A stretch of 64,000 bases of DNA, from assembly GCA_030704615.1 (NCBI GenBank), contig CM060734.1:61814001-61878000 (forward strand), read 5' to 3'. This document shows, in pieces, positions 37,087-62,541 of the stretch. The DNA comes from Takakia lepidozioides (lineage: Eukaryota > Plantae > Bryophyta). How positions within the stretch are numbered: the stretch's first letter is position 1; each line of letters begins with the position of its first letter. A model generated the notes under the pieces. The model saw nothing but the letters and a program-made list of their open reading frames with translations, was not told where the DNA came from and did not search any database. The position numbers and the translations under genes are program-made.

Positions 37087-38201
37087 TGTCGCGCGGCTTT
37101 TACTCACCCATCCCTTCGCTATTCGAGGTGGAAACTCCAAGATAGAAGAGTTGGAAATCTCTAAGTACTCAGCCCGCGCAGAACAATCAGTCATGACCTA
37201 TAGCTAGTGTATCATGGGGGTGTTTCCTATTTGTTTCCCTTTTGGCATTCATGTTAGCTACCTTACCATTGATAATTAAGTATCAGTTTGCTTTATCAAT
37301 CTATTGGATTCCATCAACTCATCCATTCATTCCACAGCTTCACTCAGATCTCTCTACACAGTGTGATTGTATCGTAAAAGTATCCGATTATGATTTATCA
37401 GGTATCAGGCCGAAGCCATTGTGTCTCTAATCTGCTCTATAATATCACTATAGCTTTGCATATAACAAGCATCTACTCATCATCTCTCTATCTTCACTTC
37501 CGTTCTTCATCTCTGCCGGATCCCCTCTCCCGCATGACCAAGAAGTCCTCTCCCGTGAAGTGCTTCCCATCGCCAAAAAGCCCCTTCTCCGTCCTTGCTT
37601 CTCGCTTTATCTTCCTACCCGTGGCTCTAACCGTTTCCCTCACTAACCGTCGTCCGTGAACTAACATGTTCCATTTGCAGGTGTTGTTCCCCACAGTCGT
37701 TCCCTGTCCTGCTCTCCGTTCCCTATGGTCGTGACAGCTGTGTCAAGCTGTGACTGGCTGTGTGAAACTGTGACGGGATGTGACTGGCTGTGCGACCGTG
37801 TTTGGCTGTGTCGGGTTGTGACTGGCTGTGTGGCTGTGTCTGCTGTGACGACTGTGACTGGCTGTGTGGCTGTGTCTGCTGTGACGACTGTGACGGGCTG
37901 TGTTGGCTGTGTCTGCTGTGACGACTGTGACGGGCTGTGTTGGCTGTGTCGGCTGTGACGACTGTGACGGGCTGTGTTGGCTGTGACTGCTGTGACGACT
38001 GTGACGGGCTGTGTTGGCTGTGACTACTGTGACGACTGTGACAGGCTGTGTTGGTTGTGTCGGCTGTGACGGGCTGTGTAACCCCCCTCTACAGTGCGCT
38101 GCTGTCATCCTTAAGGCTCCTGTTGGTCTCAGTCTGTGCAAAAATTAAGGGTACCCTATAGATCCCGTATAAGTGTCTAAGTCCCAGACAGTCCTCTAAC
38201 A
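37087..38201 (-). repeat. 3' LTR of copy D (1115 bp)
   Basis: TGTCGCGCGG...CCTCTAACA, adjoining the PPT complement 38202-38220. Confidence 0.95.
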
Positions 38202-38240
38202 TTACCCCTTCCCCTCTTCAAAAAACCGTGTCCTCACGGT

Positions 38241-41086
38241 TTATTGATTGCGATTAGCAAACCTTTGTGAGTGAGCACCTTTCTGACGTTGAGAGTTTCG
38301 TGGCGGACTGTGTGTACGAGCCCGAGATCTGTCTCTGTTTGACGGAGATGTTTGATCATTACCTGGATAAGTGAGGCCCTCTGGAGGCTGATATCGAGGT
38401 AGCCTTTCAGGCATAGGAGACCCCCGTCGCTTCTTATCTGCCATCTGAATTGTATAGTCTTCTCCCATGTCAAAAGAATTCGGTGAAGAAACAGTTGTAT
38501 CAGAATCCTCATCGCCTCTCAGGTGTTTTAATTTTCGAACTTTTTGTGGAATCCTCTGGGGCATACAATGCTGTCCTACCATGTCTGGAAGTTTATATTT
38601 TACAACTTGGTGTAACCGCTGAACAACAAAATTGGTGTAGACACTGAGCTCCTTGTCTGTCCAGGTGAGTGGGGTACCAATTACTGGTACAGCGTGCAAG
38701 TATTTCCATGCCACATGTCCCTTATAAAAAATATCATCAATGCCGAATTTCTGTGTTGACAAATTGTTCCAGGCCGCTTGAAACCATGAACGAATTTGAG
38801 AATCCTTTTGCATCATAACTTTTGCGTCATATAGGTACATATGAGGTGGCACCGAAGGTAATACCCAATGATCCCCACTGGAATAACTCAGAAAGCGTGC
38901 TTGCATCTTTTGTTGCTCAATGTGATAACGTACTAGAAAACAAGCAGCGTAGTATAACCCGCATCCCATGACAATACTTGCTACTTCCTTGGTCTTGGTA
39001 TAAATGAGTCCATGTACAACCTGGAAAGCAATCAATTCCCTCAACATGGTACCTGCCTCGTGCCAGTACTGTGCAAAGTGATGATCCTCAATTGGTCGAT
39101 TGTTCGGAAGAACTTTAGTCCTAGTTGCCACTGGCAGCCAAATGCGCATGATTTGGTAGTAATGTGCGCATGACTGCGGAGGACTAAATTCTTTCCAAGC
39201 CAAATCCAACATGATGGGATTTGGTTGAATGGCATAATCATAGCCCTACTGTACTCCCTTGCAGCTGGAGTTTTAGGTGGGTTAAAAGCAGCATTGCCCC
39301 ATACCTCAGGCTGTGGTGGTTGTGGTGTGGTTGTAGTAACAACAGGTTCAGCTACTGGTACAGTGACTTGTTGTGGTGTTGGTGGTACTGGCTCTTGTAT
39401 CATTGGCATCTCCTGCACCTCCTGTGAAGACTGAAAAGCCAAAGTTCTGGCTTGTAAATAAGAAGCCATTAGCTGTTCCTGAGGGATATAGACTCTTTTG
39501 TCGATGTTTGAAGTGAGGTCCTCCACTTGAGTCTGCAGTCCGTCTACATCCTCCTGTAACTTTGCTATCCTACTATAGACATTGTCTATAGTAGTTGTGG
39601 TAATGTTCTGCACTTGTAGTCTGAGCTCATTCATCTCGCTTTGGGTGAGCTTTCGTGGTGCTTTGCCCTCTACCGGCCCTTGTGCTAACCAGACCTGCAT
39701 AAGGCTGTTATCCACCAAGTTGCTTGTGGTTCCCTTGAGAGTTTGCTCCTCTCTTAGCTTGTACACTTCTAACTGCTGTTGTAAAGCCTCCATGCGCTTC
39801 GCATGAGGTTCAACCAAATTTGCATAAGCAGCAAGTAGATTATTAGCTTCCTTCCAAGCCTTGTTAGTGACCGTGATTTCATGTCTATTGGCCACGAGCG
39901 TTTGTTGCAACTCCAGGATGTACTTCTCTTGATCAGCTTCAACCTGCCTGTATTGCTTGAAAGTATCCTCATTGCGACAGATTGTATTCTTCATATCGAC
40001 AATGAGTTTCATTTGCTCAACATTCTCTTCTTCTGCCTTCGTACATTTTTCCGCTTTACTGTTTATTTCTTTGTAGATTGGTCAAGCATAGTTGTGAATG
40101 TAGCACATTGTATCGCCATCCTGTCATGCACTGTCTGCAACTCCGTATGTAGTGCATTCACTTCTTGCAACTTGCTTTCATGCTGCACCTGCATTTGGTA
40201 TAGCTGTTGCTTATGTGCTTCGTGCAACTGGTCTTGCGCGAGGCCTGCCTCAATCAATTGTTCCTTGGCCAATTGCAAAGCCGCTTTTGTATTTCCCAAG
40301 TCTTGCTGCATCTTGAGAGTGACCTCTTCATCGACCTTGTTTGCACACTCAGTGGCAAGTCGAGCTTCAAACTCCTTCCTGAGTTCCTCTCTCAAGGCTG
40401 TCAATTGGGTAGTTGGAACATGGGATTTGACATAAGTCCCCAACAAATTAAGTGTCCTGCCTATGGAACTCATCAGCATTGCCTATTGAGGGTCATCATG
40501 GTGACGTTGCTGCTGTTCCTCCTGATCCTCAACAGTGTGATGTCTCACAAACCACTCAGGCCATTGTCCCACCGGATTTTCTTCCTGAACCATTTCATCT
40601 ATCACCGGTGCTACAGTGTCATGAACTTCTGCCTGTGGTACCTCCGACACAGGTGTGCGTATTATATGCACCTCAGGATTTCCCTTGGGCAACTGTTGCA
40701 CCTCTGGAATCTCTGTCTCCTTGACCAGACCAGAATATTCATAGAGAAGGTCCCCCTTCTCCATTTCTGCCACTATCTGTTCTGTAGTTGGAATATCTAA
40801 CCCTTCTATTTCCAAATCAATTATTTCTGGTTGAGCTGCATGGACAACTTGTGACCTTGTGACAAGCCGATCAGCTGGCTGTGATGGTTGTGATACTGAA
40901 GTAACTTCCTCCTCCCTTTCTGAAGGTCCTGCTTCCAGTAATAGCATTTCTCTATGCTGCTGTGCCCTTTCCTGCACATGAGCTTGGGAAACATTATCAT
41001 GCGGAATCCGTGAAGCCAGTGGATCCGCCACTACAGTCTTTCCCCGTCTTTGCCTCTTAGTCTCGGGTTGCCCTGCTAGTCCACCC
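38241..41086 (-). pseudogene. 3' extra ORF of copy D, C-terminal portion
   Basis: ORFs 38241-39212, 39041-40012, 40063-40479, 40483-41031. Confidence 0.87.
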
Positions 41087-42001
41087 TGTTAGAGGACTGT
41101 AGGGGACTTAGACACTTATACGGGATCTGTAGGGAACCCTTAATTTTTGCACAGACTGAGACCAACAGGAGCCTTAGGGGTGACAGCAGCGCACTGTAGA
41201 GGGGGGGTTACACGGTCAACACAGCCCGTCACAGTCGTCACAGCCCACACAGCCAACACAGCCCGTCACAGTCGTCACAGCCCACACAGCCAACACAGCC
41301 AAACACAGTCGCACAGCCAGTCACAGCCCGTCACAGTTTCACACAGCCAGTCACAGCTTGACACAGCTGTCACGATCATAGGGAACGAAGAGTAGGACAG
41401 GGAACGACTGTGGGGAACAACACTTGCGAAGGGAACATGTTAGTTCACAGACGACGGTTAGTGAGGGAAACGGTTAGAACTGCGGATAGGAAGATAAATA
41501 GAAAAACGGGGAATTGAGGGGATCATTATTTCGGAGGAGGACTTCTTAGTCAGGTGGGAGCGGAGATCAGAGGAAAAAGCTGGAGAGCACGGTGAAGGAG
41601 GAAAGAGGATTAGTAGATGCTTGTTATATGCAAAGCGGTAGTGATATTGTAGAGCAGATTAGAGACATAATGGCTTCGGCCTGATACCTGATAAATCATA
41701 ATCTGATACTTACACGATACAATCACACTGTGTAGAGAGATCTGAGTGAAGCTGTGGATTGAATGGATGAGTGAAGAAAACCGATAGATTGATGAAGCAA
41801 ACTAATACTTAATTATCAATGGTAAGGTAGCTAAGATGAATGCGAAAAGGGAAACAAATAGGAAACACCCCCATGATACACTAGCTGTAGGTCATGACTG
41901 ATTGTTCTGCGCGGGCTGAGTACTTAGAGATTTCCAACTCTTCTATCTTGGAGTTTCCGCCTCGGATAGCGAAGGGATGGGTGAGTAAAAGCCGCGCGAC
42001 A
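41087..42001 (+). repeat. 5' LTR of copy E (915 bp)
   Basis: TGTTAGAGGACTGTAGGGG...GCCGCGCGACA. Confidence 0.97.
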
Positions 42002-42589
42002 TTTGGCGACCATACTGGGGACCTGGGACATGAACAACCAGATGTGACAGGCATCTGGTGGGATCATGGTGGTTGGACCATTAAAGAATTTGAAGTGAAT
42101 CAAATTCCCTGTGGAACAAAGGAAGAAAGATTGTCCAAACGATTCTTTCAAAGGTTCTTGGAATTGCCAGACGGTTGTAAAGAAAATATTCTTAAACGAG
42201 TGCATGATGCTGATCCAGAATGGGGTCTGGAGAAAGGAGTGATAAAGATTTATCAGGTAGCCTGTAGAGGAAGAGCATGTTGGTTACCAACATTGGTTTA
42301 TGTGATAGCATTGCTATCCATTAAACGAGTAGAGTTTGAAGGCTGGGAAGAAAGAAAGGTGAATGTTTATACTCATATGCATGAAGAGCTTGTACTGGTA
42401 AAGAATTGGATTCCAAAGGATATTTTGTGGATCAAACTCACACCAAGAACAGCTTTTCAGACTTGTTTGCCATATGGTTATATGGTAACGGAGACTTCAA
42501 GTATAGCCAAGGGTGCATTGAAGCTTGAAAGAAACCCAGGCATATACGAGAGATATTACAGAAGAGAGTTTTGGTTATTGCCACATTAA
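41894..42589 (+). CDS. 231-aa ORF upstream of gag, starting in the LTR and crossing the PBS (unknown function), copy E
   Basis: Intact ORF with ATG at 41894; conserved with copy B; stops 21 nt before the gag ATG. Confidence 0.7.
   Translation: MTDCSARAEYLEISNSSILEFPPRIAKGWVSKSRATFGDHTGDLGHEQPDVTGIWWDHGGWTIKEFEVNQIPCGTKEERLSKRFFQRFLELPDGCKENILKRVHDADPEWGLEKGVIKIYQVACRGRACWLPTLVYVIALLSIKRVEFEGWEERKVNVYTHMHEELVLVKNWIPKDILWIKLTPRTAFQTCLPYGYMVTETSSIAKGALKLERNPGIYERYYRREFWLLPH
42004..42021 (+). promoter_or_regulatory. Primer binding site of copy E (tRNA-Arg-like)
   Basis: TGGCGACCATACTGGGGA directly after LTR + TT. Confidence 0.87.
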
Positions 42590-42610
42590 AAGAAATGAAA
42601 GACATGGGAC

Positions 42611-45600
42611 ATGAGTGATGAAAGAGAAGCTAGACGACAGAGGTATTCAGCAAAAAGAGAAAGCTATCTGAAAGCTAATTATCCATATCTTTGGGAGAGA
42701 GGAATAGACATAGGAGAATCATCTGGACCTCTCACACCATCAAGATCAAAGAGTGCATCACCTATACCGGAAGAACTAGAGTGGGATGCCACTCCTTCTG
42801 TTTCTTTGCAAGAAAGATTAAGAGAATTGGTACAGGAAGAAGATCAATCACGAGGTGAAAGATCTGAGGTACATCCTTGGATAAAAGACTTGACAGAAAT
42901 CTTTGATAAGAGTTGGCATGGAACACCAAAAGCAGGAACTCCAGTTTCTGAAGCAGAAGATGAAGAAGGAGAAGAGGATGTGGCAGAGCCAACGGAGAGT
43001 TCAGACTCTCCAACACCATTACAGTTGAGTTACATGAGTGAAGAAGAAACCCAAGGGCAGAACTTGGAGGATGAAAACAGAGAGAAGAAATTAGAAGAAG
43101 AAGAATATGAAGAAGTAGACCCAACAGCTGAGGTTGAGACTACAACCAGGACATCCCAACCCGTTGGACCTGGATCAAGTGGAGCACTTGGATCACAGAC
43201 CAACGAAGGTGTCGGCTCAGGGGGATCAGGCGGGCTGCCTGGATCTGGCTCTGGGGGGACAGGGAGTGTGGGAAGTAGTGCAACTGAAGCTGGGAATACT
43301 GTGAATATCGTGGGACCAGAAGCAAGGAGTGCTCAAGGGCCACCACTTGGTGGAAGATCCACCACAAAAACAACAGGTCCAGAAGGACCAGCACCAGCAA
43401 GGGTGCCAGCACCTGTCAGTGGGCAGAAGGTAGGGCCACAGATGGCGTTACAACCAACACGGGCAAAACCACCCTTTCCAATATATTCAGGAAAAGGGGA
43501 TCCCGATGTACACATTAGCCAATTTGAGCACATGTGTATAGTGAACAATGAGAATGGCGATGATGCCAAAATGAGACTGTTTCCTTGTTCACTTATCAAG
43601 AAAGCAAGTGAATGGTATGCAAGATTCCCTGATAATCATTTCCTAACCTGGAATGGCTTGAATACAGCATTTCGAAATAGGTTCAGGACAAGTAAAACTG
43701 AGGATGAAGTGTATGGAAGTTTACAGCAGCTGAAGCAGAAGAAGCATGAAACTGTTGAAGAGTATATGGAGAAGATGGAATTGATGATGAAAAAACTGGC
43801 TGCAGTACCAGCGCCCCGGTTTACAGAAGACTTGGTTTGTGAGTGGATTAAGACCAGAGTTGCAAAAGAAAGTGGATATGTTACCCCATAACACAGTGGA
43901 GGAGGCATTTGAAACTGCGAACAGAATTGAGCAATTGGGAATGCTCAGGAGAGAGAAAAAAGAAGATGAGGACTCTGAGGATGAGTCAGATGAAGAAGAA
44001 GAGCAAGAACTAAAAAGAAAGAGTAAGAGAAAGGAAAAGTTGAAGAGGGATAACTATGAAAAAAAATTGGAAGAAAAATCTTGAAGAAGTATGCCACAGA
44101 GGCTGCAACACATTGGAGGAAGGGTGTATGGTGTGCAAAGTGCCAGAATGAAGGCCATACCACCACAGAATGCCACATGAAGGAGAAACACTGTACTATC
44201 TGTAAAATGGATAACCATTCTACTGAGAATTGTTACTACAACAGAAGGACAGCTGCAAGAGAACCTAGGCAAGTAAGGGTGCATCAGGTGCAGCCCCAGC
44301 CAAGAAGAAACAATGATCAGGACCACTATGGTAGGTCTGGTGGTTATAACAATGGCATGGAAGGGAGAGGTAATTCAAGGGGAATTACCAAGGAAATTCC
44401 AGAGGCAACTATCAAGGTAATCCAAGGGGGAATTACCAGCCCGGGAATCAGGATTATAGAAATAATCCAAGAACAGACCAAGGGCGAGGACCCAATGGTG
44501 AAGAGCTATGTTACTATTGTAATCAGCCAGGACATCGCAAGGCAGCCTGTTCATTCTGGATAAGACACCAGAATGAGATGAGAGCTCCTGTGAATGAGGG
44601 CCCAGTGGTGGCAGCTCACATGGTTAGGCCATGTGCTTGTACCAGAAGTAAGTACAATGATAGTAACAAGAAGTAAAGCCAAACTAATACCTCCAGTAGA
44701 AGAGGAAGAAGATGAGACTGGAAGTGGCAATGATATGCCTGAAGATGAAGAGACTTGGAAAGATGAGAAGGAACTGCACAAGGAAGTGGCAGATACTATA
44801 AGGGAAATGCAAAAGAGTACTGATATTCCTGTGGCAGATTCCTCTGATTCGGATGGAGAAAAAGAAGGGAGTGAGGAAGAAAGGAAAAAAAAAGATGCAG
44901 ACATGCAAAGTAATGAAGAGACTTTGGCTGCAGTAATATGTCAGACCAAAGCAGAAATTACCATTGGACAGCTATTAGCTGTGGCACCTTATTGTAGGCA
45001 CAGGCTGTATCAGGCAATCAATCGAATTGCCCAAGAGACAGGAAACACAGACCTGAACAGCAAGGTGACCAGTTATAATGTGAAGCCGGAAGGGCGAGAA
45101 CCAGTCATGGACTTTGATGATTCTATGCCAGTAATCCAATTGAGAATTGGAAGCACAGAACTAACTGATGTACTGATAGATGGTGGTTCTGGAGTAAATA
45201 TCATGACAGACCAATTAAGGAAGAAGCTTGGTCTAAGTAACATGAAACCAGCCCCATTTACAGTAACAATGGCAGATCAAAGAAGTGTGCAGCCATTGGG
45301 ATTAATAAGAGGAGTTAAGATACAGATACAAAAAATGATCTTTATGATCACAGTAACTGTATTAAAAATGGATGAAGTCATGGAGGCTTACTCCTTATTA
45401 TTGGGACGTCCGTGGCTGAAACAGGCCAGGGTATTCCATGACTGGAATTCTCAGTTATTAACCGTGCATAATGGGATACACGAGATACAAATTACCACAA
45501 AGAAATCTAGTAGATTACCTGCTACAAGAAGACCTCGAGGAGTCAGAGAGTATGACTGGAGAGGAGGACTGGATGAGGAGCAGGAAGCTACCCTATTTGC

Positions 45601-48600
45601 TGCACACCCAGAGTGGGAGCAGGTTGCGGAGATGCGGCTGGAAAGCCTAAGTTGTTTGAGAGGTATCTGCTGTGGTGTAGTGACAGCAACACCAACTGAA
45701 GAGGAAACTAGCATTTACCCATCACATTTCTATGAAGAGAGAGAAGGAGAAATAGAAATCCTAGAAGAACCAGCCACTGTGAGCTTACAGGATGAAGTGG
45801 TGACTGGTTGGACAATCACAGCTGATGAGCAGGTGAGAGAAGTAAATGTGGGAACTCAGGAGGAACCGAGGATGGTGAAAGTAGGAGCTGATTTGGAGCC
45901 GGAATTCTTCGAAGAAGCTAAAAGCTTGTTCATCAAATACAGAGATGTATTTGCTTGGAGCTATGAGGATCTAAAAGGGATACCACCTGAAGTCTGTCAG
46001 CATAAGATTGAACTGGAACCAGGGTCAGTACCAATCAAGCAGGCGAGGTATAGAATGAATCCCAACTACGCACAGAAGGTTGGAGAAGAGATAAAGAAGT
46101 TGGCTGAGGCTAAGTTTATATACCCAATAGAGTATACAACTTGGTTGTCACCCATTGTAATAGTTCCCAAGAAGAATGGCAAACTGAGAGTATGTGTGAA
46201 CTATAAGAAGCTGAATGCTTGTACGAAGAAGAAAGATCCTTTCCCTTTGCCATTCACAGAAGCAGTATTAGACACTGTGGCAGGCCATGAGATGTACTCA
46301 TTCATGGATGGCTTCAGTGGTTATAATCAAGTGCAAGTGGCAGAAGAAGACCAAGGGAAAACAGCTTTCATCACAGACTGGGGGGCTTATGCATACAAAG
46401 TCATGCCCTTTGGACTTTGTAATGCACCAGCGACCTTTCAGAGAGTGATAAGTGAATCTTTTCATGAGTATCTGGATGATTTCATGCAGGTATTCTTGGA
46501 TGATTTCAGTGTGTACAGCTCTAAGAGTGAGCACTTGCATAAATTGGAGTTATGTTTGGCCAGATGCAGGATGAGAGGTCTGGGCCTGAATCCAGAGAAG
46601 TGTACTTTCTGTGTGAACTCAGGGGTGCTTCTGGGACACATTGTGTGTAAGAAGGGACTCCTTGTGGATCCCAGGAAGACAGAGTCCATTAAAGCATCTC
46701 CACCCCCAGTGAATGTTAAAAGTCTACGAAGATTCCTTGGGCAAACCAGTTATTACAGAAGATTTGTCAAAAGGTATGCACAAATAGCAGCACCATTGAG
46801 CAAGCTTCTGAAGAAAGATGCAGTGTTTGCCTGGACAGCTGAATGTCAACAGGCGTTTGAGGAACTTACACTGTCAGTAACAACTACACCTGTGCTGATT
46901 AACCCCCACTGGCATGTAGTATTTCATGTTCACTGCGATGCATCAGGAGAAGCGTTGGGTGCGGTGTTAGCCCAGAATGTTACAGGGAATATAGATTCAC
47001 CTGTGTACTATGCTAGCCGGTTGATGAACAGTGCTGAGAGGAACTATAACAACGGAAAGAGAAGCATTGGCAATGATTTATGCAGTCAAGAAATTCAGGC
47101 ATTACCTATTGGGAAGAAAGTTTATGTTTTATGTGGATCACCAGGCTCTGATATATCTGGTGAACAAACCTTTGATAAGTGGAAGGATAGCGAGGTGGTT
47201 AATAATCTTGCATGAGTTTGAGTTCGAGGTTATTTACAAGCCTGGCCGTTTGCATCTTGTGGCAGATCATTTGTCAGGACTAACAACAGGAGAGGCCGCC
47301 ACAGGAGTGGACGATCAGTTACCTGATGCGAGTTTATTTGTAATGGAGGTGCAAGGAAGTGCAGATGAATGGTTAGATTGGCAGTGGCCAATCAGATACT
47401 ACCTTGCTCATGGTCAGTGCCCACCTAGTTATGGTAAGGAGCAGAGGAAGAGAATTGCTATCAAAGCTTTACCTTATACTATGGTAGGAAGCAGAATGTA
47501 TAAGTTAGGACCTGATGGAGTACTAAAACGATGCTTGTACCACCATGAAGTAAATAAAGTCTTGGAGGAAGTTCATAAAGGAGTGGCTGGAGGTCATTTT
47601 GGAGAAGAGACTACCAGTAGAAAGATACTACTCGCAGGATACTGGTGGCCTACTTTGTTCAAAGATGTACATGAGTATTGTCAGAAGTGTGATGAATGTC
47701 AGAGGCTAGGACCTTTGCAGAGATCTGGAAGGATGGCCTTGCATCCTACAATGCCTACGGAACCATTTCAGAAATGGGGACTAGACTTTGTTGGACCAAT
47801 TAATCCACCATCCAAGAATACACGAAACAGGTACATAATTACAGCCACTGATTATACTACAAAGTGGGTGGAAGCTAAAGCTTTGAGGGACAACACAGCC
47901 AAGTCCACAGCAAGGTTCCTGTACGAGAACATACTTACACGATTTGGCTGTCCCTTAGAATTTATCAGTGATCAAGGAAGTCACTTCATGAATGAGACCA
48001 TTGAGTTGTTGACTAAAGAGTTTATGATTGTGCATAGAAAGAGTACAACATATTACCCGCAGGGTAATGGGCAGGCAGAGGCTACCAACAAAATACTATG
48101 TACTATCTTGGCTAAGATAGTCAATGCAAACAGAACGGATTGGGATACAAAGCTGCTGACAGCTTTATGGTCATACAGGACTTCATATAAAGTCACCACT
48201 AAGTATACACCATTCCAATTAGTTTATGGTATGGAAGCCTTACTTCCAGTGGAATTCCTGTTACCTACCATGAGAACGGAGTGGGGAAAAAGAATGGAAT
48301 TGCAAGACTCCATCAAGGTCAGGAAACATGAATTATACCATGTGGAAGAAGTACGTGCTGATGCAGCTGATAATATGACCAGAATTCAGATGAAGCGAAA
48401 GGAACAGTTTGATGAAGGCAAGTTAAAGACTTTTAAGACGGGGGATTTGGTTCTATGGTTGCAGAAGAAAGGAAAGATTCAAGCTTCTAAGCTTAAATCA
48501 CCATGGAAAGGACCTTATGTCATACAAAAGATGTATGATAACAACACAACCATGTTACAAACCATTAACAAAGAAATGCTGGGAAGAGTCAATGCAAATA

Positions 48601-48878
48601 AGTTGAAGGGGTACAGTGGTATCCATGACAAACCCCTGCAGCATGATTTGCATGTTGAACCGCAAGAGCAGTCACGGGCTGCACCAGTGTTACGAACGGA
48701 GTATGGAACACTTGTCGCTAGGCCCAGTTATATGACCGGGGTGGGCAAAACAAACGTGACACAGCCTATCACAGCCCATCACGGCGTGACACAGCCTATC
48801 ACAGCCCATCACGACGTGACACAGCAACCACAGCCCAGCAAGGCGCAACACAGCCTACCACAGCCCGTCACGACGTGA
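42611..48878 (+). CDS. gag-pol polyprotein of copy E (Gag, 3 CCHC, PR, RT, RH, INT); a few small frameshifts
   Basis: ORFs 42611-43891, 44081-44563, 44594-47215, 47031-48878; LIDGGSG, VFLDDF, HCDASG, GHFG..CQKCDEC, WGLDFVGP, WKGPY. Confidence 0.95.
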
Positions 48879-49028
48879 CACAGCCAACCACAACCCAGCA
48901 AGGCGCAACACAGCCTATCACAACCTACCGCAGCGTGTCACAGCCTATCACAGCTTACCACAGTGCAACACAGCCTATCACAGCGTAACACAGTATGACA
49001 CAGCCTGTCACAGCTCAACACAGCCTAC
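48755..49028 (+). repeat. Internal CACAGCC(TAT) tandem array overlapping the pol stop, copy E
   Basis: GTGACACAGCCTATCACAGCCCATCACG x2, then degenerate units. Confidence 0.88.
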
Positions 49029-49085
49029 TAAAGTTACACCATCCATAGAATCAGTGGCAAGTGGACACATAATAACTTCAGGAAA

Positions 49086-52000
49086 ATGGATGACGGAAGA
49101 GAAAACGGAAATTACTTAAAAATAGACACGTGGAGGTCAGGGTGCGACACACAGCAGAGAATGAAGTGCAAGGACAGGTGTCAAAAAGAAAGAGGAAAAG
49201 AACGGCCGTCAAATGGGATGAAAGGCGGGCCCATTAATGAATACGGAAAAAGGGCGGCAAGTACAGAAAAGCCGAATTCTTGTCACATGTGTGATCCTAG
49301 TGGACTATCCAAGAGGGAAAGTCCACTAAAGAAGATAAAATTTAAAATCCAGTCACAGCGGATACAGCCAATAGAAAACCAGAGAAAGGATCAAGAAAAT
49401 GGAGAAAAATTGAGCGCAAGAGGCGGCGTCGTTCTGAGTAACGGGCGTCTCGACAGGACAGGCCATAAATGCTATAACTTGGAAACTATGGAGGAACTAA
49501 CAGACTATACGCTCGCAATATTACTTACGCAGTGGCATAGACACGAAAGGACAGAGCAGAGCTTTTCTCTTGAACAATGCTTGCAAGCCCCGCAGGCTTA
49601 CAAGAAATTACCCATAGCTTTCTGCGGCAACCATACGTTTATGCTTTGTGCACTACAGGCATTCCTGCAGTTGTTACAGCCAAAGCAGTTCTGTGAGTCT
49701 AAAATGAAGAGAGTGAGAGGAATGGAGGAAATCAGGGTGAAGAGCACCACAATTCTGCAGAAACAAACGATGGCTACCCCACAGGCGATAAAGATACTGG
49801 AGGAGCTGAGATTGGAAGGATTGCAAAGCCTGGATTGGACACTACACCATAGACAGTACATGTTACAATTTTTGCAGAACTTTGAGCCAAGGACAGGAAC
49901 AACAACGGTGAAGGGAGTTGAATTAATGATTACTCCCCTATACCTCCAGCAATTGTTTCAATTGCCAGCAGGTCAGGTGCATGTGGGGGAACACAGGGCA
50001 AGACTGCAAATAGGGGACTTATTCCAAGAAGGGAGTTTCTTTAAAACTCAGGGTTATGCTTGTACCAAAGCTGTGTACCCAGGGTTAAAAGAGATAGGCC
50101 AGGTATTGAACGTTCTGATTGCCCTGAAACAGAACCAACAATATTTGAGCAGATCCTTCACAGAGGAAATACTCAAAGGCCTGAAGGGACAAGAGGTACA
50201 ATGGGCGGACATAATGTACAACGCACTAGTAGAGGAGATGAAAAGATTACAAGGTACTACCGCAAAGTCTCCTATCATTGTGTCTGGCCCAATCATTGCT
50301 CAAATAATCCTTAATTCTGGCATACTTAATGCACAAGAAAGGAAGGAAATGGGAGTGTTTGAGCCAGAAACAACTGCAATGGAAGAGCAAGGCTCTTCAC
50401 ACAGTGAGGGTGGACTAGCAGCACAACCCGAGACTAAGAGGCAGAAAAGGGGAAAGACTGTAGTGGCGGATCCACTGGCTTCACGGATTCCGCATGATAA
50501 TGTTTCCCAAGCTCATGGCCAGGAAGGGGCACAGCAGCACAGACAAATGCTATTACTGGAAGCAGGACCTTCAGAGAGGGAGGAGGAAGTTACTTCTGCA
50601 TCACAGCCAACACAGCCACTTGAACGACTTGTCACAAGGTCACAAGTTATCCATGCAGCTCAACCCGAAATAATTGATTTGGAAAGTGAAGGGATAGATA
50701 TTCCAACTACAGAACAAATAGTGGCAGAAATAGAGAAAGGGGACCTTCTCTATGAATATTCTGGTCTGGTCAAGGAGACAGAAATTCCAGAGGTGCAACA
50801 GTTGCCCAAGGGAAATCCTGAGGTGCATATAATACACACACCTGTGTCGGAGGTACCACAGGCGGAAGGTCATGACACTGTAGCACCGGTGATAGATGAA
50901 GTAGTTCAGGAAGAAAATCCGGTGGGACAATGGCCTGAATGGTTAGTGAGACATCATACTGTTGAAGATCAGGAGGAACAGCAGCAACCTCACCATGATG
51001 ACCCTCAACAGGCAATGCTGATGAGTTTCATAGGCAGGACACTTAATTTGTTGGGGACTTATGTCAAATCCCATGTTCCAATTACCCAATTGACAGCCTT
51101 GAGAGAGGAAGGAGTTTGAGGCTCGACTAGCCACTGAGTGTGCAAACAAGGTCGATGAAGAGGTCACTCTCAAGATGAAGCAGGACTTGGGCAATACAGA
51201 AATAGCTTTGCAGTTGGCCAAGCAACAATTGATTGAGGCAGGCCTCGCACAAGACCAGTTGCACGAAGCACATAAGCAACAGCTATACCAAATGCAGGTG
51301 CAGCATGAAAGCAAGTTGCAAGAACTGAATGCACTACATACGGAGTTGCAGACAGTGCATAACAGGATGGCGATACAATGTGCTACATTTACAACTATGC
51401 TTGACCAATCAACAAAAGAAATAAACAGTCAAGCGGAAAAATGTACGAAGGCAGAGGAAGAGAATGTTGAGCAAATGAAGCTCATTGTCGATATGAAGAA
51501 TACAATCTGTCGCAATGAAGATACTTTCAAGCAATACAGGCAGATGGAAGCTGATCAAGAGAAACACATCGTGGAGTTGCAACAAATCATCGTGGCCAAT
51601 AGAAATGAAATCGCGGTCAGTAACAAGGCTTGGAAGGAAGCCAATATCTACTTGCTGCCTATGCGCAATTGGTTGAGCCACAGGCGAAGCGCATGGAGGC
51701 TTTACAACAGCAGTTGGAATTGTACAAGCTAAGAGAGGAGCAAACTCTCAGGGGAACCACAAGCAGCTTGGTGGATAACAGCCTTATGCAGGTCTGGTTA
51801 GCACAAGGGCCAGTAGAGGGCAAAGCCCCACGGAAAGCTCACCCAAAGCGAGATGAATGAGCTCAGGCTGCAGGTGCAGAACATTGCCACAACTACTATA
51901 GACAATGTCTATAGTAGGATAGCAGAGTTACAAGAGGATGTAGACGGACTCCAGACTCAAGTGGAAGACCTCACTTCAAACATCGACCAAAGAGTCTCTA

Positions 52001-53243
52001 TATCCCTCAGGAACAGCTAATGGCTTCTTATTTACAAGCCAGAACTTGGCTTTTCAGTCTTCACAGGAGGTGCAGGAGATGCCAATGATACAGGAGCCAG
52101 TACCACCACCACCACAACAGGTCAGTGTACCAGTAGCTGAACCTGTGGTTACTACAAACCACCACAGCCACCACAGCCGGAGGTATGGGGCAATGCCGCT
52201 TTTAACCCACCTAAAACTCCAGCTGCAAGGGAGTACAGCAGGGCTATGCTTATGCCCTTCAACCAAATTCCCATCATGTGGATTTGGCTTGGAAAGAATT
52301 TAGTCCTCCGCAGTCATTCGCACATTACTACCAAATCATGCGTATTGGCTGCCAGTGGCAACTAGGACTAAAGTTCTTCCAAACAATCGACATATTGAAG
52401 ATCATCACTTTGCACAATACTGGCACGAGCAGGTACATGTTGAGGGAATTGTTGCTTTCCAGGTTGTTGTACATGGACTCATTTATACCAAGACCAAGGA
52501 GATAGCAAGTATTGTCATGGGGTGCGGGCTATACTACGCTGCTTGTTTTCTGGTACGTTACCACATTGAGCAACAAAAGATGCAAACACGCTTTCAAAGT
52601 TACTCCAGTGGAGATCATGGGTATTACCTTCGGTGCCACCTCATATGTACCTATATGACCCAAAAGTTATGATGCAGAAGGATTCTCAAATTCGTTCATG
52701 GTTTCAAGCAGCCTGCAACCATTTGTCAACACAGAAATTCGGACTTGATGACATTTTCTATAAGGGACATGTGGCATGGAAGTACTTGCACGCTGCACCA
52801 GTAATTGGTACCCCCACTCACCTGGACAGACAAGGAGCTCAGTGTCTACACCAATTTTGCTGTTCAGCGGTTACACCAAGTTGTAAAATGCAAACTTCCA
52901 GACATGGTAGGACAGCATTGTATGCCCCAGATGATTCCACAAAAAGGTTCGAAAATTAAAACACCTGAGAGGTGATGAGGATTCTGATACAACTGTTCTT
53001 CACAGAATTCTTTTGACATGGAGAAGACTATGCAATTCAGATGGCAGAAAAGAAGCGACGGGGGTCTCCTATGCCGGAAAGGTTACCTCGATATCAGCCT
53101 CCAGAGGGCCTCACTTATCAAGGTAGTGATCAACCATCTCCGTCAACCAGAGACAGACCTCGGGCTCGTACACACAGTCCACCACGAAACTCTCAACGTC
53201 AACAGGTGCTCACTCACAAAGGTTTGCTACTCGGAAACAGTAA
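49086..53243 (+). CDS. Giant 3' extra ORF of copy E; first 677 codons open, later frameshifted
   Basis: ORF 49086-51119 then fragments to TAA 53241-53243; probable start ATG 49488 (MEELTDY). Confidence 0.85.
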
Positions 53244-53265
53244 ACCGTGAGGACACGGGCTTTTT

Positions 53266-53285
53266 GAGGGGGAAGGGGTGGAGGA
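53266..53285 (+). promoter_or_regulatory. Polypurine tract of copy E
   Basis: GAGGGGGAAGGGGTGGAGGA before TGTTAG. Confidence 0.85.
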
Positions 53286-54204
53286 TGTTAGAGGACTGTA
53301 GGGGACTTAGACCCCAACTATACGGATCTGTAGGGAACCCTTAAATTTTTGAACAGACTGAGACCAACAGGAGCCTTAGGGGGTGACAGCCCGCACTGTA
53401 GAGGGGGTGGTTACACGGCAACCCACAGCCCGTCACAGTCGTCACAGCCACACAGCCAACACAGCCGTCACAGTCGTCACAGCCCACACAGCCCACACAA
53501 GCCAAACACACAGTCGCACAGCCAGTCACAGCCCGTCACAGTTTCACACAGCCAGTCACAGCTTGACACAGCTGTCACGATCATAGGGAACGAAGAGTAG
53601 GACAGGGAACGACTGTGGGGAACAACACTGCGAAGGGAACATGTTAGTTCACAGACGACGGTTAGTGAGGGAAACGGTTAGAACTGCGGATAGGAAGATA
53701 ATAGAAAAAAACGGGGAGGGAATTGAGGGGATCATTATTCGGAGGAGGACTTCTTAGTCAGGTGGGGAGCGGAGATCAGAGGAAAAGATGGAGGCACGGT
53801 GAAGAGGAAGAGGATTAGTAGATGCTTGTTATATGCAAAGCTATGTAGTGATATTGTAGAGCAGATTAGAGACATAATGGCTTCGGCCTGATACCTGATA
53901 AATCATAATCTGATACTTATACGATACAATCACACTGTGTAGAGAGATTGAGTGAAGCTGTGGATTGAATGGATGAGTGAAGGAAACCGATAGATTGATG
54001 AAGCAAACTATACTTAATTATCAATGGTAAGGTAGCTAAGATGAATGCGAAAAGGGAAACAAATAGGAAACACCCCCATGATACACTAGCTGTAGGTCAT
54101 GACTGATGTTCTGCGCGGGCTGAGTACTTAGAGATTTCCAACTCTTCATCTTGGAGTTTCCGCCTCGGATAGCGAAGGGATGGGTGAGTAAAAGCCGCGC
54201 GACA
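53286..54204 (+). repeat. 3' LTR of copy E (919 bp)
   Basis: Near-identical to 41087-42001 apart from small indels. Confidence 0.97.
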
Positions 54205-55126
54205 CACCCTCACTGTGTGAAGAGCCTTGCTCTTCCATTGCAGTGGTTTCTGGCTCAAACACTCCATTTCCTTTCTTTCTTGCGCATCAAGTAGCCAGAA
54301 TCAAGAATTATTTGAGCAATAATGATTGGGCCAGACACTATGATAGGAGACTGCGGTAGTACCTTGTAATCTTTTCATCTCCTCCACTAGTGGTTTTGAA
54401 ATTATCTACGACCCATGTACCTCTTTGTCCCTTCAGGCTTTGAGTATTTCCTCCGTGAAGGATTCGCTCAATACTGTTGGTTCTGTTTCATGGCAATCAG
54501 AACGTTCAATACCTGGCCTACCTCTTTTTTCCCTGGGGTACACAGCCTTGGTACAGCAAACCATGGTTTTAAAGAAACGCCCTTCTTGATAAGTCCCCTA
54601 TTTGCAGTCTTGCCCTGTGTTCCTCCACATGCACCTGTCCTGCTGGCAATCGAAACAATTGCTGGGGTATAGGGGAGTATAGTAATCACTAATTCAACTC
54701 CCTTCACCGTTGTTGTTCCTGTCCTGGCTCAAAGTTCTGCAAAAATTGTAACATGTACTGTCTTGGTGTTAATGTCCAATCTATGCTTTGCAATCCTTGC
54801 AATCTCAGCTCCTCAAGTATCGATCGCCTGTGGGGTAGCAATCGTTTGTTTCTGCAGAATTGTGGTGCTCTTCACCCTGATTTCCTCCATTCCTCTCACT
54901 CTCTTCATTTTAGACTCACAGAACTGTTTGTTTGGCTGTAACAACTACAAAAATGCCTGTAGTGCACAAAGCATAAACGTATGGTTGCCACAAAAAGCTA
55001 TGGGTAATTCTTGTAAGCCTGTTGAGCTTGCAAGCATCGTTCAGAGAAAAAGCTCCGCTTGTTTCTTTCGTGTCTTTGCCACTGCGTAAGTAATATTGCG
55101 AGCGTATAGTCTGTTAGTTCCTCCAT
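54205..55126 (-). pseudogene. 3' extra ORF of copy D, N-terminal portion (indel-rich)
   Basis: Continues the sequence interrupted at 41086; MEELTDYTLAILLTQW, KGVELVIT, VGQVLNVLIAMKQ. Confidence 0.82.
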
Positions 55127-55588
55127 AGTTTCCCAAGCTATAGCATTGATGGTCTGTCCCGTCGAGACGCCGTTACTTGAACGACGCCGCCTCTTGCGCT
55201 CAATTCCTCCATTTTCTTGATCCTTTCTCTGGCTTTCTATTGGCTGTATCCGCTGTGACTGGATTTTAGATTTCATTTCTTTAGTGGACTTTCCCTGCTG
55301 GATAGTCCACTAGGTCACAAATGTGACAAGATTTCGCTTTCTGTACTTGCCTTTTTTCCGTTCCCCTTTTTTCCGTATTCATTAATGGGGCCGCCTTTTC
55401 ATCCATTTTGACGGCCGTTCTTGTCCTCTTTCGTTATGACACCTGTTCTTGCACTTCTTCTAGCTGTGTATCGCGCCCGACTTCCACGTGTCTATTTTTA
55501 ACTGGTTTCCGTCTTTTCTGCCGTAGCCATTTTCCTAAGTTATTGTGTGTCCACCTGTCACTGATTCTATGGATGGTGTAACTTAGTA

Positions 55589-55708
55589 GGCTGTGTTGAG
55601 CTGTGACAGGCTGTGTCATACTGTGGTACGCTGGGTGATAGGCTTTTGTGACACGCGGTGGTAGGTGGTGATAGGCTGTGTTGTGCCGTGCTGGGCTGTG
55701 ATAGGCTG
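55589..55708 (-). repeat. Internal CACAGCC tandem array, copy D (short)
   Basis: GTGATAGGCTG units. Confidence 0.75.
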
Positions 55709-58700
55709 GTTCGCCTTGTCCGCCCGCCCTGGTCATATATGCTTGGCCTAGCGACAAGTGCTCCATACTCGTTGGTAACACTGGTGCAGCCCGTGATTGC
55801 TCTTGCGTTTCAACTGCAAATCATGCTGCAAGGGTTTGTCATGGATACCACTGTATCACTTTAACTTATTGGCATTGACTCTTCCCAGCATTCTTTGTTA
55901 ATGGTTTGTAACATGGCGGTGTTGTTATCATACATCTTTTGTATGACATAAGGTCCTTTCCATGGTGATTTAAGCTTAGAAGTTTAATCTTTCCTTTCTT
56001 CTGCAACCATAGAACCAAATCCCCGTCTTAAATGTCTTTAACTTGCCTTCATCCAACTGTTCCTTTCTCTTCATCTGAATTCTGGTCATATTATCAGCTG
56101 CATCAGCACGTACTTCTTCCCTGGTATAATTCATGTTTCCTGACCTTAATGGAATCTTGCAATTCCATTCTCTTTCCCCACTCCGTTCTCATGGTAGGTA
56201 ACAGGAATTCCACTGGAAGTAAGCCTTCCATACCATAAAATATTGGAATGGTGTATACTTAGTGTGACTTTGTATGAAGTCCTGTATGACCACAAAACTG
56301 TCAGCAGCTTTGTATCCCAATCAGTTCTGTTTGCATTGGCTATCTTAGCCAAGATAATACATAGTATTTGTTGGTAGGCCTCTGCCTGCCCATTACCCTG
56401 GGGTAATATGTTGTAATCTTTCTATGCACAATCATAACTCTTTAGTCAAAACTCAATGGTCTAATTATGAAGTGACTTCCCTGATCACTGATAAATTCTA
56501 AGGGACAGCCAAATCGTGTAAGTATGTTCTCATACAGGAACCTTGCTGTGGACTTGGCTGTGTTGTCCCTCAAAGCTTTAGCTTCCACCCACTTTGTAGT
56601 ATAATCAGTGGCTGAATTATGTACCTGTTCCGTGTATTCTTGGCTGGTGGGTTAATTGGTCCAACAAAGTCTAGTCCCCATTTCTGAAATGGTTCCGTAG
56701 GCATTGTAGGATGCAAGGCCATCCTTCCAGATCTCTGCAAAGGTCCTAGCCTCTGACATTCATCACAACTCTGACAATACTCGTGTACATCTTTGAACAA
56801 AGTAGGCCACCAGTAACCTGCAGTAGTATCTTCCTACTGGTAGTCTCTTCTCCAAATGACCTCCAGCCACTCCTTTATGAACTTCCTCCAAAACTTTATT
56901 TACTTCATGGTGGTACAAGCATCGTTTTAGTACTCCATCAGGTCCTAGCTTATACATTCTGCTTCCTACCATAGTATAAGGTAAAGCTTTGATAGCGATT
57001 CTCTTCCTCTGCTCCTTACCATAACTAGGTGGGCACTGACCATGAGCAAGGTAGTATCTGATTGGCCACTGCCAATCTAACCAGTCATCTGCACTTCCCT
57101 GCACCTCCACTGCAAATAGACTCGCATCTGGTAATTGATCATCTATTCCTGTGGCTGGTTCTCCTGTTGATAACCGTGACAAGTGATCCGCCACAAGATG
57201 CAGTCTCCCAGGCTTGTAAACAACCTCGAACTCAAACTCGTGCAAGATTATCAACCATCTTGCTATTCTTCCGCTTATCAGAGGTTTGTTTACCAGGTAT
57301 TCAGAGCCTGGTGATCCACATAGAACATAAACTTCTTGCCCAACAGGTAATGCCTGAATTTCTTCACTGCATAGATCATTGCCAATGCTTCTCTTCCGTT
57401 GTGCTATAGTTCCTTTCAGCACTGTTCATCAACCGGCTAGCATAGTACACAGGTGAATCTATATTCCTGTAACATTCTGGGCTAACACCGCTCCCAACGC
57501 TTCTCCTGATGCATCGCATGAACATGGAATACTACATGCCAGTGAGGGTTAATCAGCACAGGTGTAGTTGTTACTGACAGTGTAAGTTCCTCAAATGCCT
57601 GTTGACATTCAGCTGTCCAGGCAAACACTGCATCTTTCTTCTTCAGTAGTTTGCTCAATGGTGCTGCTATTTGTGCATACCTTTTGACAAATCTCCTGTA
57701 ATAACTGGTTTGCCCAGGAATCTCCTTAGACTTTTAACATTCACTGGTGGTGGAGAGGCTTTAATGGACTCTGTCTTTCTGGGATCCACAAGGAGTCCCT
57801 TCTTACACACAATGTGTCCCAGAAGCACCCCTGAGTTCACACAGAAAGTACACTTCTCTGGATTCAGGCCCAGACCTCTCATCCTGCATCTGGCCAACAT
57901 AACTCCAATTTATGCAAGTGCTCATTCTTAGAGCTGTACACACTGAAATCATCCAAGAATACCTGCATGAAATCATCCAGATACTCATGAAAAGATTCAC
58001 TTATCACTCTCTGAAAGGTCGCTGGTGCATTACAAAGTCCAAAGGGCATGACTTTGTATGCAAAGCCCCCCAGTCTGTGATGAAAGCTGTTTTTCCTTGG
58101 TCTTCTCTTCTGCCACTTGCACTTGATTATAACCACTGAAGCCATCCATGAATGAGTACATCTCATGGCCTGCCACAGTGTCTAATACTGCTTCTGTGAA
58201 TGGCAAAGGGAAAAGATCTTTCTTCGTACAAGCATTCAGCTTCTTGTAGTTCACACATACTCTTAGTTTACCATTCTTCTTGGGAACTATAACAATGGGT
58301 GACAACCAAGTTGTATACTCTATTGATATATAAACTTAGCCTCAGCCAACTTCTTTATCTCTTCTCCAACCTTCTGTGCGTAGTTGGGATTCATTCTGTA
58401 CCTCGCCTGCTTGATTGGTACTGACCCTGGTTCCAGTTCAATCTTATGCTGACAGACTTCAGGTGGTATCCCTTTTAGATCCTCATAGCTCCAAGCAAAT
58501 ACATCTCTGTATTTGATGAACAAGCTTTTAGCTTCTTCAAAGAATCCGGCTCCAAATCAGCTCCTACTTTCACCATCCTCGGTTCCTCTTTAGTTCCCAC
58601 ATTTACTTCCCTCACTTGCTCATCAGCTGTGATTGTCCAACCAGTCACCACTTCACCTGTAAGCTCACAGTGGCTGGTTCTTCTAGGATTTCCATTTCTC

Positions 58701-61700: not shown

Positions 61701-61822
61701 AGAGGTCCAGATGATTCCCCTATGTCTATTCCTCTCTCCCAAAGATATGGATAATTAGCTTTCAGATAGCTTTCTCTTTTTGCTGAATATCTCTGGCGTC
61801 TAGCTTCTCTTTCATCACTCAT
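55690..61822 (-). pseudogene. gag-pol of copy D, heavily frameshifted
   Basis: INT 56146-57422, RT 57667-58523, PR 59027-59647, gag 59874-61822. Confidence 0.92.
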
Positions 61823-61843
61823 GTCCCATGTCTTTCATTTCTT

Positions 61844-62541
61844 TTAATGTGGCAATAACCAAAACTCTCTTCTGTAATATCTCTCGTATATGCCTGGGTT
61901 TCTTTCAAGCTTCAATGCACCCTGGCTATACTTGAAGTCTCCGTTACCATATAACCATATGGCAAACAAGTCTGGAAAGCTGTTCTTGGTGTGAGTTTGA
62001 TCCACAAAATATCCTTTGGAATCCAATTCTTTACCAGTACAAGCTCTTCATGCATATGAGTATAAACATTCACATTTCTTTCTCTCCCCAGCCTTCAAAC
62101 TCTACTCGCTTAATGGATAGCAATGCTATCACATAAACCAATGTTGGTAACCAACGTGCTCTTCCTCTACAGGCTACCTGATAAATCTTTCACTCACTCC
62201 TTTCTCCAGACCCCATTCTGGATCAGCATCATGCACTCGCTTAAGAATATTTTCTTTACAACCGTCTGGCAATTCCAAGAACCTTTGAAAGAATTGTTTG
62301 GACAATCTTTCTTCCTTCGTTCCACAGGGATTTGATTCACTTCAAATTCTTTAATGGTCCAACCACCATGATCCCACCAGATGCCTGTCACATCTGGTTG
62401 TTCATGACCCAGTTCCCCAGTATGGTCGCCAAATGTCGCGCGGCTTTTACTCACCCATCCCTTCGCTATTCGAGGCGGAAACTCCAAGATAGAAGAGTTG
62501 GAAATCTCTAAGTACTCAGCCGCGCAGAACAATCAGTCATG
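61844..62541 (-). pseudogene. 5' LTR/PBS-spanning ORF of copy D, frameshifted
   Basis: Fragments 62194-62532 and 61844-62026 match the 231-aa ORF. Confidence 0.7.
62414..62431 (-). promoter_or_regulatory. Primer binding site of copy D
   Basis: TCCCCAGTATGGTCGCCA on the + strand. Confidence 0.87.

Follow-up and report, generated by a model that had tools for sequence, protein, structure and literature searches.

A Ty3/Gypsy retrotransposon of a moss with a giant sense extra ORF and CACAGCC arrays in its LTRs and at the pol junction

Does the Gypsy-type element at positions 41087-54204 of the analysed stretch (the window, 64,000 nt of the Takakia lepidozioides genome) carry selected genes of its own besides gag and pol, and what are the CACAGCC repeat arrays that lie in its LTRs and in front of its last ORF? 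What extra ORFs do in plant LTR retrotransposons is a long-standing open question (PMC7264820). The family described here is an unusually clean case, with a very large selected sense ORF that has no homologue in the databases searched and is flanked by two arrays of one motif. The host, a moss, is open to routine transgenesis and methylome analysis. We compared the target copy (T) with four further family copies within the window (A, B, C and D); they form two subfamilies separated by dS ~0.15. The whole is best explained, with a probability of roughly 0.55, by a young and complete copy of a high-copy, lineage-specific moss Gypsy family with four selected units, a regulatory U3 array and the accessory ORF3.

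A complete element nested in its own family

Positions 41087-54204 are one complete Ty3/Gypsy LTR retrotransposon with exact boundaries, inserted into an older copy (D) of its own family. The structural features are as follows.

41082..41086 (left) and 54205-54209 (right), flanking both sides of the element: target-site duplication CACCC, 5 bp
41087..42001, + strand: 5' LTR, 915 bp, TG..CA
42004..42020, + strand: primer-binding site, starting TGGCGACC (TGG), which begins 2 nt past the 5' LTR
53266..53285, + strand: polypurine tract, abutting the 3' LTR
53286..54204, + strand: 3' LTR, 919 bp, TG..CA, with its own U3 array at 53424-53572
37927..41086, - strand: 3' part (ORF3 and LTR) of the older host copy D
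54205-63239, - strand: 5' part of the same copy D

The insertion splits copy D at element position ~9321-9326. The Pfam domain order (Retrotrans_gag, RVT_1, RT_RNaseH, Integrase_H2C2, rve) is that of Gypsy elements. Pfam detected no Chromo match, the mark of chromoviruses, in the 615-aa integrase ORF. Unlike Tat/Ogre/Retand elements, the target copy has by Pfam only the RT-linked RNase H and no second (archaeal-type) one, the mark of Tat. Nor did Pfam find TRP28, or any other family, in the element's three antisense ORFs of 100 aa or more. Phygy, the described moss clade of non-chromoviruses, also differs, being short and without extra ORFs (PMC6317226).

Many of the frame breaks are single-base deletions, and the assembly shows a strong bias towards single-base deletions in repeats. 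Such breaks may be assembly errors, frame and start-codon details are unreliable, and a gene of these elements that looks 'broken' in this assembly need not be so.

Coding units and the giant ORF3

Ka/Ks values show frame-specific purifying selection on four units of the family, the upstream ORF, gag, pol and ORF3, which lie in the target copy as follows.

41894..42589, + strand: upstream ORF, 231 codons, starting inside the LTR and reading through the primer-binding site
42611..44563, + strand: gag, capsid-like domain (Pfam), interrupted in the target copy
44594..48878, + strand: pol (protease-like, RT, RNase H, integrase), with one frame change in 47031-47215
49086..53240, + strand: ORF3, giant additional ORF in sense orientation, ~1,385 codons, filling the interval from pol to the 3' LTR

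The conserved 5' ORF that the sequence-only reading had noticed besides gag-pol is borne out. It is also kept in copies B and D, its Ka/Ks is 0.11-0.26 (shifted frames give >1), and it shares the frame of gag, stopping 7 codons 5' of the gag ATG at a conserved TAA..TGA pair. Pfam returned no match for it at E up to 10, and an exact-protein look-up found it not on record. Ka/Ks is 0.12-0.23 for gag, which contains a Cys/His knuckle-like region within 44081-44563, 0.05-0.27 for pol and 0.11-0.15 for the integrase.

The 3' sense ORF, claimed at about 1250+ codons, is real and longer. The earlier figure was an underestimate because ORF3, counted from the junction ATG, has about 1,385-1,400 codons. 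Its Ka/Ks between the subfamilies is 0.28-0.33, with 1.0-1.4 in shifted frames. The target copy retains an intact piece at 49086-51119 (677 aa) and the remainder is split into smaller pieces, all breaks being small indels with zero in-frame stops; over ~1,360 ORF3 codons neither T nor B has an in-frame stop. In copy C (23846-28441) one frame spans 1,532 codons and is broken by only 4 stops, and its ORF3 ends 38 nt 5' of the 3' LTR. The element thus carries an additional ORF in the usual sense, at least 250 codons outside gag-pol and conserved in most copies.

ORF3 is an orphan, without Pfam family, homologue or usable fold in the searches made. Pfam was run on all ORF3 pieces, and at E up to 10 on four pieces of ORF3 and the upstream ORF. 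It assigned the ORF3 pieces to no family, neither to the plant mobile domain (PMD) of MAIN/MAIL1 nor to VANC/DUF1985, and a DNA-binding domain was not recognisable; the few weak matches, of coiled-coil type or, below threshold, to Pox_Rap94, were taken as compositional. Word-index protein searches with three ORF3 pieces returned 0 matches, under a length filter that would hide full-length relatives, and an exhaustive HMMER search of the C-terminal domain against 1.84 billion representatives also returned 0. ESM Atlas held no usable match, PDB nothing by sequence, and metagenome and viral contigs no related loci, so that no relative was found outside the family itself. AlphaFold2 models of both globular regions, made from the single sequence without an alignment, had mean pLDDT of 39 and 32 and are unusable; a fold search with them would be meaningless.

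ORF3 is predicted to open with a basic N-terminus that contains Cys; two globular domains follow, then a helical stretch of ~330 residues, probably a coiled coil, and finally a basic tail. Near the N-terminus, which is not hydrophobic, lie basic stretches that resemble an NLS and a cluster of conserved Cys residues. Two borderline segments (Kyte-Doolittle 1.7) bear charged residues, and neither a signal peptide nor a membrane anchor of the kind expected in env-like ORFs (Athila, Bagy2) is clearly recognisable in ORF3. We suggest that ORF3 is an accessory protein required for the propagation of the family, translated probably either from a spliced subgenomic RNA or as part of an extended pol. 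The spliced RNA is proposed because of a conserved TTCAG|G just 5' of the ORF3 ATG. Contigs from candidate RNA runs (the RNA status of two runs is presumed) contained only patches of the family, with nothing covering 48391-49769 and no joint at the ORF3 junction.

Plant Gypsy elements with additional ORFs or with tandem repeats 3' of pol have been described (PMC7264820, PMC6317226, PMC11963269, PMC7004042). The class with aORFs or eORFs includes the env-like ORFs of Athila and Bagy2, ORF1 of Ogre and the antisense ORFs of Grande, RIRE2 and Retand, and their products have been proposed, but not shown, to act in regulation or in the nucleus (PMC7264820, PMC6317226). The moss family resembles this class in having extra ORFs ahead of gag as well as in the pol-to-3' LTR interval in all copies, conserved about as well as gag and without database homologues. 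It differs in that its 3' ORF is sense, far larger (~1,400 codons) and fills the whole interval.

The CACAGCC arrays

Tandem Repeats Finder detected three arrays, which are listed here with the TATA-like box of the 5' LTR.

41210..41367, + strand: U3 array, CACAGCC-type units of 9-10 bp, higher-order unit 37 bp
48754..49027, + strand: junction array, 27 units of 10 bp, higher-order unit 30 bp
53424-53572, + strand: array of the 3' LTR, units of 9-10 bp, higher-order unit 37 bp
41492..41500, + strand: TATA-like box GATAAATAG, a sequence motif only, ~125 bp 3' of the U3 array

The sense strand of the element contains 37 perfect CACAGCC cores (10, 13 and 9 in the three arrays), compared with an estimated chance expectation of ~1 in 13 kb and 0 in the window's 6.4 kb of non-family DNA. 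That one core is amplified both in the LTR and upstream of the 3' ORF, as the sequence-only reading had stated, holds for the family: arrays in the same orientation were found at 5/5 junctions and in 7/7 LTR copies uncut by a gap. Their size varies from copy to copy, with 4-13 perfect cores at the junctions and 15-37 units in the LTRs, and the core positions of the units are better conserved than the 3-nt spacers. The CACAGCC arrays are hypervariable minisatellites retained by every copy. No G-quadruplex motifs were detected in them.

The arrays had been placed ahead of both probable transcription units, which stands for the LTR array, ~125 bp before the TATA-like box and with four GGGAAC motifs in between. 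For the junction array a promoter position is doubtful because it ends only 59 nt 5' of the ORF3 ATG at 49086, and no TATA-like motif was seen by eye in this 59-nt spacer.

The U3 array is probably a multimerised cluster of cis-regulatory sites upstream of the LTR promoter, and it would be read by a putative trans factor, by default a transcription factor of the host. Tandem enhancers in U3 are familiar from the BII boxes of Tnt1, the 13-bp repeats of Tto1 and the 72-75 bp repeats of MLV; such retroviral and plant repeats lie upstream of the LTR TATA box, their copy number is linked to promoter strength, and host factors are known. The moss U3 array is similar, a repeated short motif upstream of an LTR TATA-like box. 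The differences are the second array of the same core inside the moss element and a reader factor that here is only putative.

The junction array may be leader, linker or coding DNA rather than promoter, as the frames across it differ between copies. It is probably either a second cluster of U3-type sites or a descendant of the U3 array that template switching during reverse transcription copied there, and as such it would belong to the transcribed stretch ahead of ORF3, as leader or linker, and not to a classical promoter. Because the 30-nt higher-order period is a multiple of three, translation of the array is possible, and we weighed a rather unlikely explanation in which the integrase runs through the array into ORF3 as one giant polyprotein, the array encoding a repetitive Thr/Gln/Pro/His-rich linker instead of a regulatory site. 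The period of 30 nt equals 10 codons and is indel-free in the target copy, the integrase frame extends 37 codons into the array and is the ORF3 frame in copies A and B, and the ORF3 frame of copy C is open backward across the whole array. Read contigs indicate an extra T after 49115 in most genomic copies, which would put the junction ATG out of frame and join ORF3 to the upstream frame. However, the length differences between the arrays of different copies are not divisible by three, stops interrupt at least one of the relevant frames in each copy, and the frame relation varies by copy. The basic unit of 10 nt is not a coding period, and a TAA or TAG right after the last unit, in the frame of the ATG, is kept in 5/5 copies.

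We find it improbable that the arrays are functionless products of slippage in replication or reverse transcription, with the shared core explained by one array seeding the other. The strong polymorphism of array length would fit this, such arrays are common in plant Gypsy elements without known function (PMC7004042, PMC11963269), and 10-bp minisatellites of the CACAGCC type are widespread in unrelated metagenome contigs. An array pattern scan of metagenomes detected only unrelated minisatellites and two unrelated Gypsy elements without an ORF3 homologue. But every copy of the two subfamilies retains both arrays, the core is more conserved than the spacers, and the U3 array lies at enhancer distance from the TATA-like box. 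Tat/Ogre/Retand elements have hypervariable tandem-repeat regions 3' of pol, with a proposed slippage origin and a function that is unknown (PMC7004042, PMC11963269). The moss arrays share with them short, family-specific post-pol repeats whose length varies between copies, whereas the junction array precedes a coding ORF and is not in a long 3' UTR, and its core recurs in U3.

Does ORF3 recognise the arrays?

VANC proteins are the anti-silencing proteins of VANDAL (Mutator-like) DNA transposons (PMC5735166, PMC10398659). By analogy, ORF3 could enter the nucleus as a sequence-specific factor, bind the CACAGCC arrays of its own family that bracket it, and protect the copies from silencing or activate their transcription, protein and arrays co-evolving. 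If true, it would give LTR retrotransposons their first element-encoded anti-silencing system of the VANC kind, with an independent origin in a bryophyte, and binding of the arrays by ORF3 would mean that sequence-specific self-recognition arose independently in retrotransposons. Even if ORF3 does not bind the arrays, the family brings to light a giant accessory protein of a new class in Gypsy elements of bryophytes. The anatomy is real; the action of ORF3 on the arrays is hypothetical and its function putative.

We consider this self-recognition very unlikely. The anatomy is that of published VANC targets, a short motif in one orientation and at high density, in arrays at non-coding or junction positions whose units are rapidly gained and lost (PMC5735166), and the moss family, like VANDAL elements, encodes an accessory protein. 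ORF3 is under selection, its NLS-like stretches and Cys cluster would suit a nuclear protein, and the two arrays bracket it in genomic RNA and DNA. The carrier, however, is an LTR retrotransposon with no sequence relation to VANDAL, and binding of the motif with loss of DNA methylation, a mark of VANC, is for ORF3 a prediction. The lack of a DNA-binding, PMD or DUF1985 domain, of a homologue and of a fold argues against recognition of the arrays by ORF3. Both subfamilies (dS ~0.15) have kept one core, so motif and protein show no sign of having diverged together; the undiverged motif is a further difference from VANDAL/VANC. Arrays of 10-bp CACAGCC units were also detected in the LTR of an unrelated chromovirus (L110) without an ORF3 homologue, and a host factor or chance therefore fits equally. 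The chromodomain of L110 was detected by Pfam.

Family copies and the anatomy of the target element

Judged on its sequence, the target, a Ty3/Gypsy LTR retrotransposon, is best read as a variant of a known Gypsy kind with additional ORFs and tandem repeats. Self-comparison detected a single retrotransposon family nested repeatedly across the window.

Family copies detected by self-comparison
1-9553, minus: copy A
10066-22260, minus: copy B, nearly full length
22606-29457, plus: copy C, 3' half of the element
near 35845-36864 and 37087-37912: solo LTRs
37927-41086 and 54205-63239, both minus: copy D, in two pieces
41087-54204, plus: target element (copy T), within copy D

The target insertion interrupts ORF3 of copy D, the giant sense ORF between pol and the 3' LTR, at family position ~9323. 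Its LTRs (915 and 919 bp, both with TG..CA termini) are flanked by a 5-bp duplication, CACCC; the primer-binding site begins with TGG two bases past the 5' LTR, and directly before the 3' LTR lies a polypurine tract. LTR-LTR identity is 95% (BLAST), the difference being mostly small indels and the mismatch clusters arising from them, and the presence of only 2 substitutions in the last 395 aligned LTR bases marks the insertion as young. Two 500-N gaps lie at family-copy edges (9555-10054 and 63252-63751), so the assembly is unresolved there. The sole 6.4 kb of the window outside the Gypsy family contains a fragmentary ORF that encodes a DUF4216 domain (29689-30237, plus strand, Pfam E 5e-9), a 154-bp tandem repeat (30475-30793) and a poly-A run (31315-31364). 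DUF4216 is a domain of plant transposon proteins, in keeping with a plant genome.

Pfam detected a gag capsid-like domain, RT, RNase H, integrase zinc-binding domain and integrase core in the target, in Gypsy order, and neither a chromodomain nor a second RNase H. The upstream ORF (41894-42589, 231 aa) starts at LTR position 808, and its frame crosses the primer-binding site. It ends in a TAA..TGA pair, common to copies T, B and D, 7 codons ahead of the gag ATG and is in the same frame as gag (separator at 42587-42613); two separate cistrons or stop-codon readthrough are both possible. Within the gag-to-pol region of the target, a TAA at 43889-43891 recurs in copy D and a TAA at 44561-44563 in copies B and D. 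Past the first of these, gag apparently goes on in a different frame; for both codons, natural recoding and shared error are indistinguishable here.

The two extra ORFs: selection, frame breaks and the ORF3 protein

ORF3 lies after the integrase and in copy C reaches to 38 nt from the 3' LTR. The single frame that holds it there spans 1,532 codons and contains four stops; from the junction ATG onward, ORF3 measures ~1,385-1,400 codons. Pairwise comparison of copies across the two subfamilies (T/B vs A/C) gave ORF3 Ka/Ks values of 0.28-0.33, with the minimum of 0.16 in codons 1000-1200, and 1.0-1.4 for the same columns in the two shifted frames.

In-frame Ka/Ks of the other coding regions
Upstream ORF: 0.11-0.26
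gag: 0.12-0.23
Protease-RT-RNase H: 0.05-0.27
Integrase: 0.11-0.15

Out-of-frame values were near or above 1, except that one shifted frame gave 0.6-0.7 for gag and for part of pol. Because in-frame Ka/Ks is low and out-of-frame Ka/Ks is near or above 1, the upstream ORF and ORF3 are real genes of the family. Pfam, Ka/Ks and repeat data together confirm the anatomy proposed in the sequence-only reading, namely gag-pol with a 5' ORF and a 3' ORF, and CACAGCC arrays in the LTRs and before the 3' ORF.

No in-frame stops were found in ORF3 of copies T and B, and the breaks are all small indels.

Unique single-base indels in ORF3
Copy T: 13 deletions, 3 insertions
Copy B: 12 deletions, 3 insertions
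Copy A: 19 deletions, 1 insertion
Copy C: 0 deletions, 0 insertions

Contigs of X1, a public run containing about half of the sampled words from this stretch, have one base more at many of the deletion places (e.g., after 49115, 52159, 52278, 52344 and 52435). The strong deletion excess is probably the error profile of an unpolished long-read assembly, and therefore broken TE genes in this assembly are possibly artefacts; in that case the target could be less damaged than its sequence suggests.

ORF3 layout, read from the copy C translation, in order
First region: basic, containing a conserved Cys cluster (C-x3-C ... C-x2-C) along with NLS-like stretches
Residues ~270-570: hydrophobic, presumably globular
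Next region: acidic
Region of ~330 residues: Gln/Glu/Lys-rich, with Pfam signals only weak, to helical or coiled-coil families
Linker: Pro/Thr-rich
Residues ~1190-1420: second globular region
Tail: basic, Ser/Pro-rich

The N-terminus is not hydrophobic and there are only two borderline hydrophobic segments; the protein bears no obvious resemblance to an envelope protein, and a membrane segment could still be present. ORF3 matched no Pfam family at any threshold, PMD and DUF1985 included, and gave zero matches in three word-index protein searches and no match in PDB or ESM Atlas. Metagenome and viral contigs contained no locus related to it, and its C-terminal domain had zero matches among 1.84 billion representative proteins. 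Single-sequence AlphaFold2 models (mean pLDDT 39 and 32) were unusable.

CACAGCC arrays and possible routes of ORF3 expression

Repeated U3 motifs are classical enhancers. The LTR array, at LTR positions 124-281, consists of units in which CACAGCC or CACAGTC precedes 2-3 variable bases, with a 37-bp higher-order unit; it has 15 to 37 units in the window LTR copies uncut by a gap, and unit number explains most of the LTR length spread (915-1122 bp). It ends ~125 bp upstream of the TATA-like GATAAATAG, and by sequence its position is that expected of a U3 enhancer-type repeat. Four GGGAAC motifs, 13-19 bp apart, lie between this array and the TATA-like box (41380-41440).

The junction array at the pol/ORF3 boundary (48754-49027) is built from a 10-bp unit repeated 27 times, and its 30-bp higher-order unit combines two good cores with one degenerate unit. 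Its core positions are more conserved than the three spacer positions. All five copies covering the region have the junction array, with 4-13 perfect cores and with length differences that are not multiples of three. The motif is on the sense strand in both arrays and, since the shared heptamer cannot be chance, they are related by descent, function or both.

The suggestion that arrays precede both transcription units holds for the LTR array and is doubtful for the junction array, which is separated from the ATG at 49086 by 59 nt only, with no TATA-like motif visible by eye in this spacer (the computed motif scan covered the LTR). The integrase frame enters the junction array for 37 codons. 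Directly before the ORF3 ATG, TTCAG|G is kept in four copies and could be a candidate splice acceptor, for which retroviral env and barley Bagy2 provide precedent (PMC7264820). A further T after 49115 distinguishes copies B and C, as well as the majority of read contigs, from copies T, A and D; with it, the ATG at 49086 is out of frame and ORF3 extends upstream, at least over the last array units and in copy C across the whole junction array. In this assembly, with its error profile, the apparent integrase/ORF3 frame relation varies among copies. Because of the short spacer, the integrase frame, TTCAG|G and the extra T, three options for ORF3 expression appear possible: a spliced subgenomic mRNA, translation that carries on from pol, or a start upstream of the junction array.

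Expression data were contigs of three runs, with RNA status guessed for two. They contain family patches (LTR U3 and R, integrase, ORF3 parts) at 85-93% identity. A 1,845-nt contig of X2, a possible RNA run, with depth 77, matches 50719-51969 in four islands only (~85% identity) and may represent an ORF3-like but diverged transcript, whether of another family or of a domesticated copy. Neither candidate RNA run covers 48391-49769, and no joint was found at the pol/ORF3 junction.

Comparison with known elements and the VANC parallel

Plant Gypsy elements are well known to carry extra ORFs, both before gag and between pol and the 3' LTR, and most of these are orphans of unknown function (PMC7264820, PMC6317226). 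Tat/Ogre/Retand elements typically show family-specific tandem repeats of variable length downstream of pol (PMC7004042, PMC11963269). ORF3 is unusual here in its size as a sense ORF and in having no homologue in any of the searches, as is the single core motif in U3 and junction, by which ORF3 is bracketed by arrays in both DNA and genomic RNA. The bryophyte host adds to this, as the only non-chromovirus clade described from moss is short and without extra ORFs (PMC6317226).

The sequence-only reading also drew a parallel to VANC, the anti-silencing protein of VANDAL DNA transposons, in which the ORF3 product could act on the element's own arrays. The likeness stands in the anatomy, as VANC targets (PMC5735166) and the CACAGCC arrays share a short motif, single orientation, dense packing and fast gain and loss of units. 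It does not extend to the protein domain (no DUF1985) or the transposon class, and the binding and hypomethylation steps are hypothetical here. No co-divergence of motif and protein was detected between the two subfamilies (dS ~0.15). On our analysis, a VANC-like action of the ORF3 product on its own arrays seems improbable. A pattern scan detected 10-bp CACAGCC minisatellites commonly in unrelated DNA, including the presumed LTR of L110, an unrelated chromovirus that lacks an ORF3 homologue, and therefore a host factor or chance is weakly favoured over a dedicated element-encoded reader.

Two unrelated metagenome Gypsy elements have 10-bp TGCACAGCC arrays (contigs L110, 1997-2191, and L088, 7141-7266). 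In L110, the chromovirus, the array lies between pol and the next gag, antisense to pol, presumably in an LTR. The L088 arrays are 3' of two extra ORFs, beyond a 70-80 bp repeat array, and this type of array with its flank was also detected in L035, L039, L054, L062 and L107.
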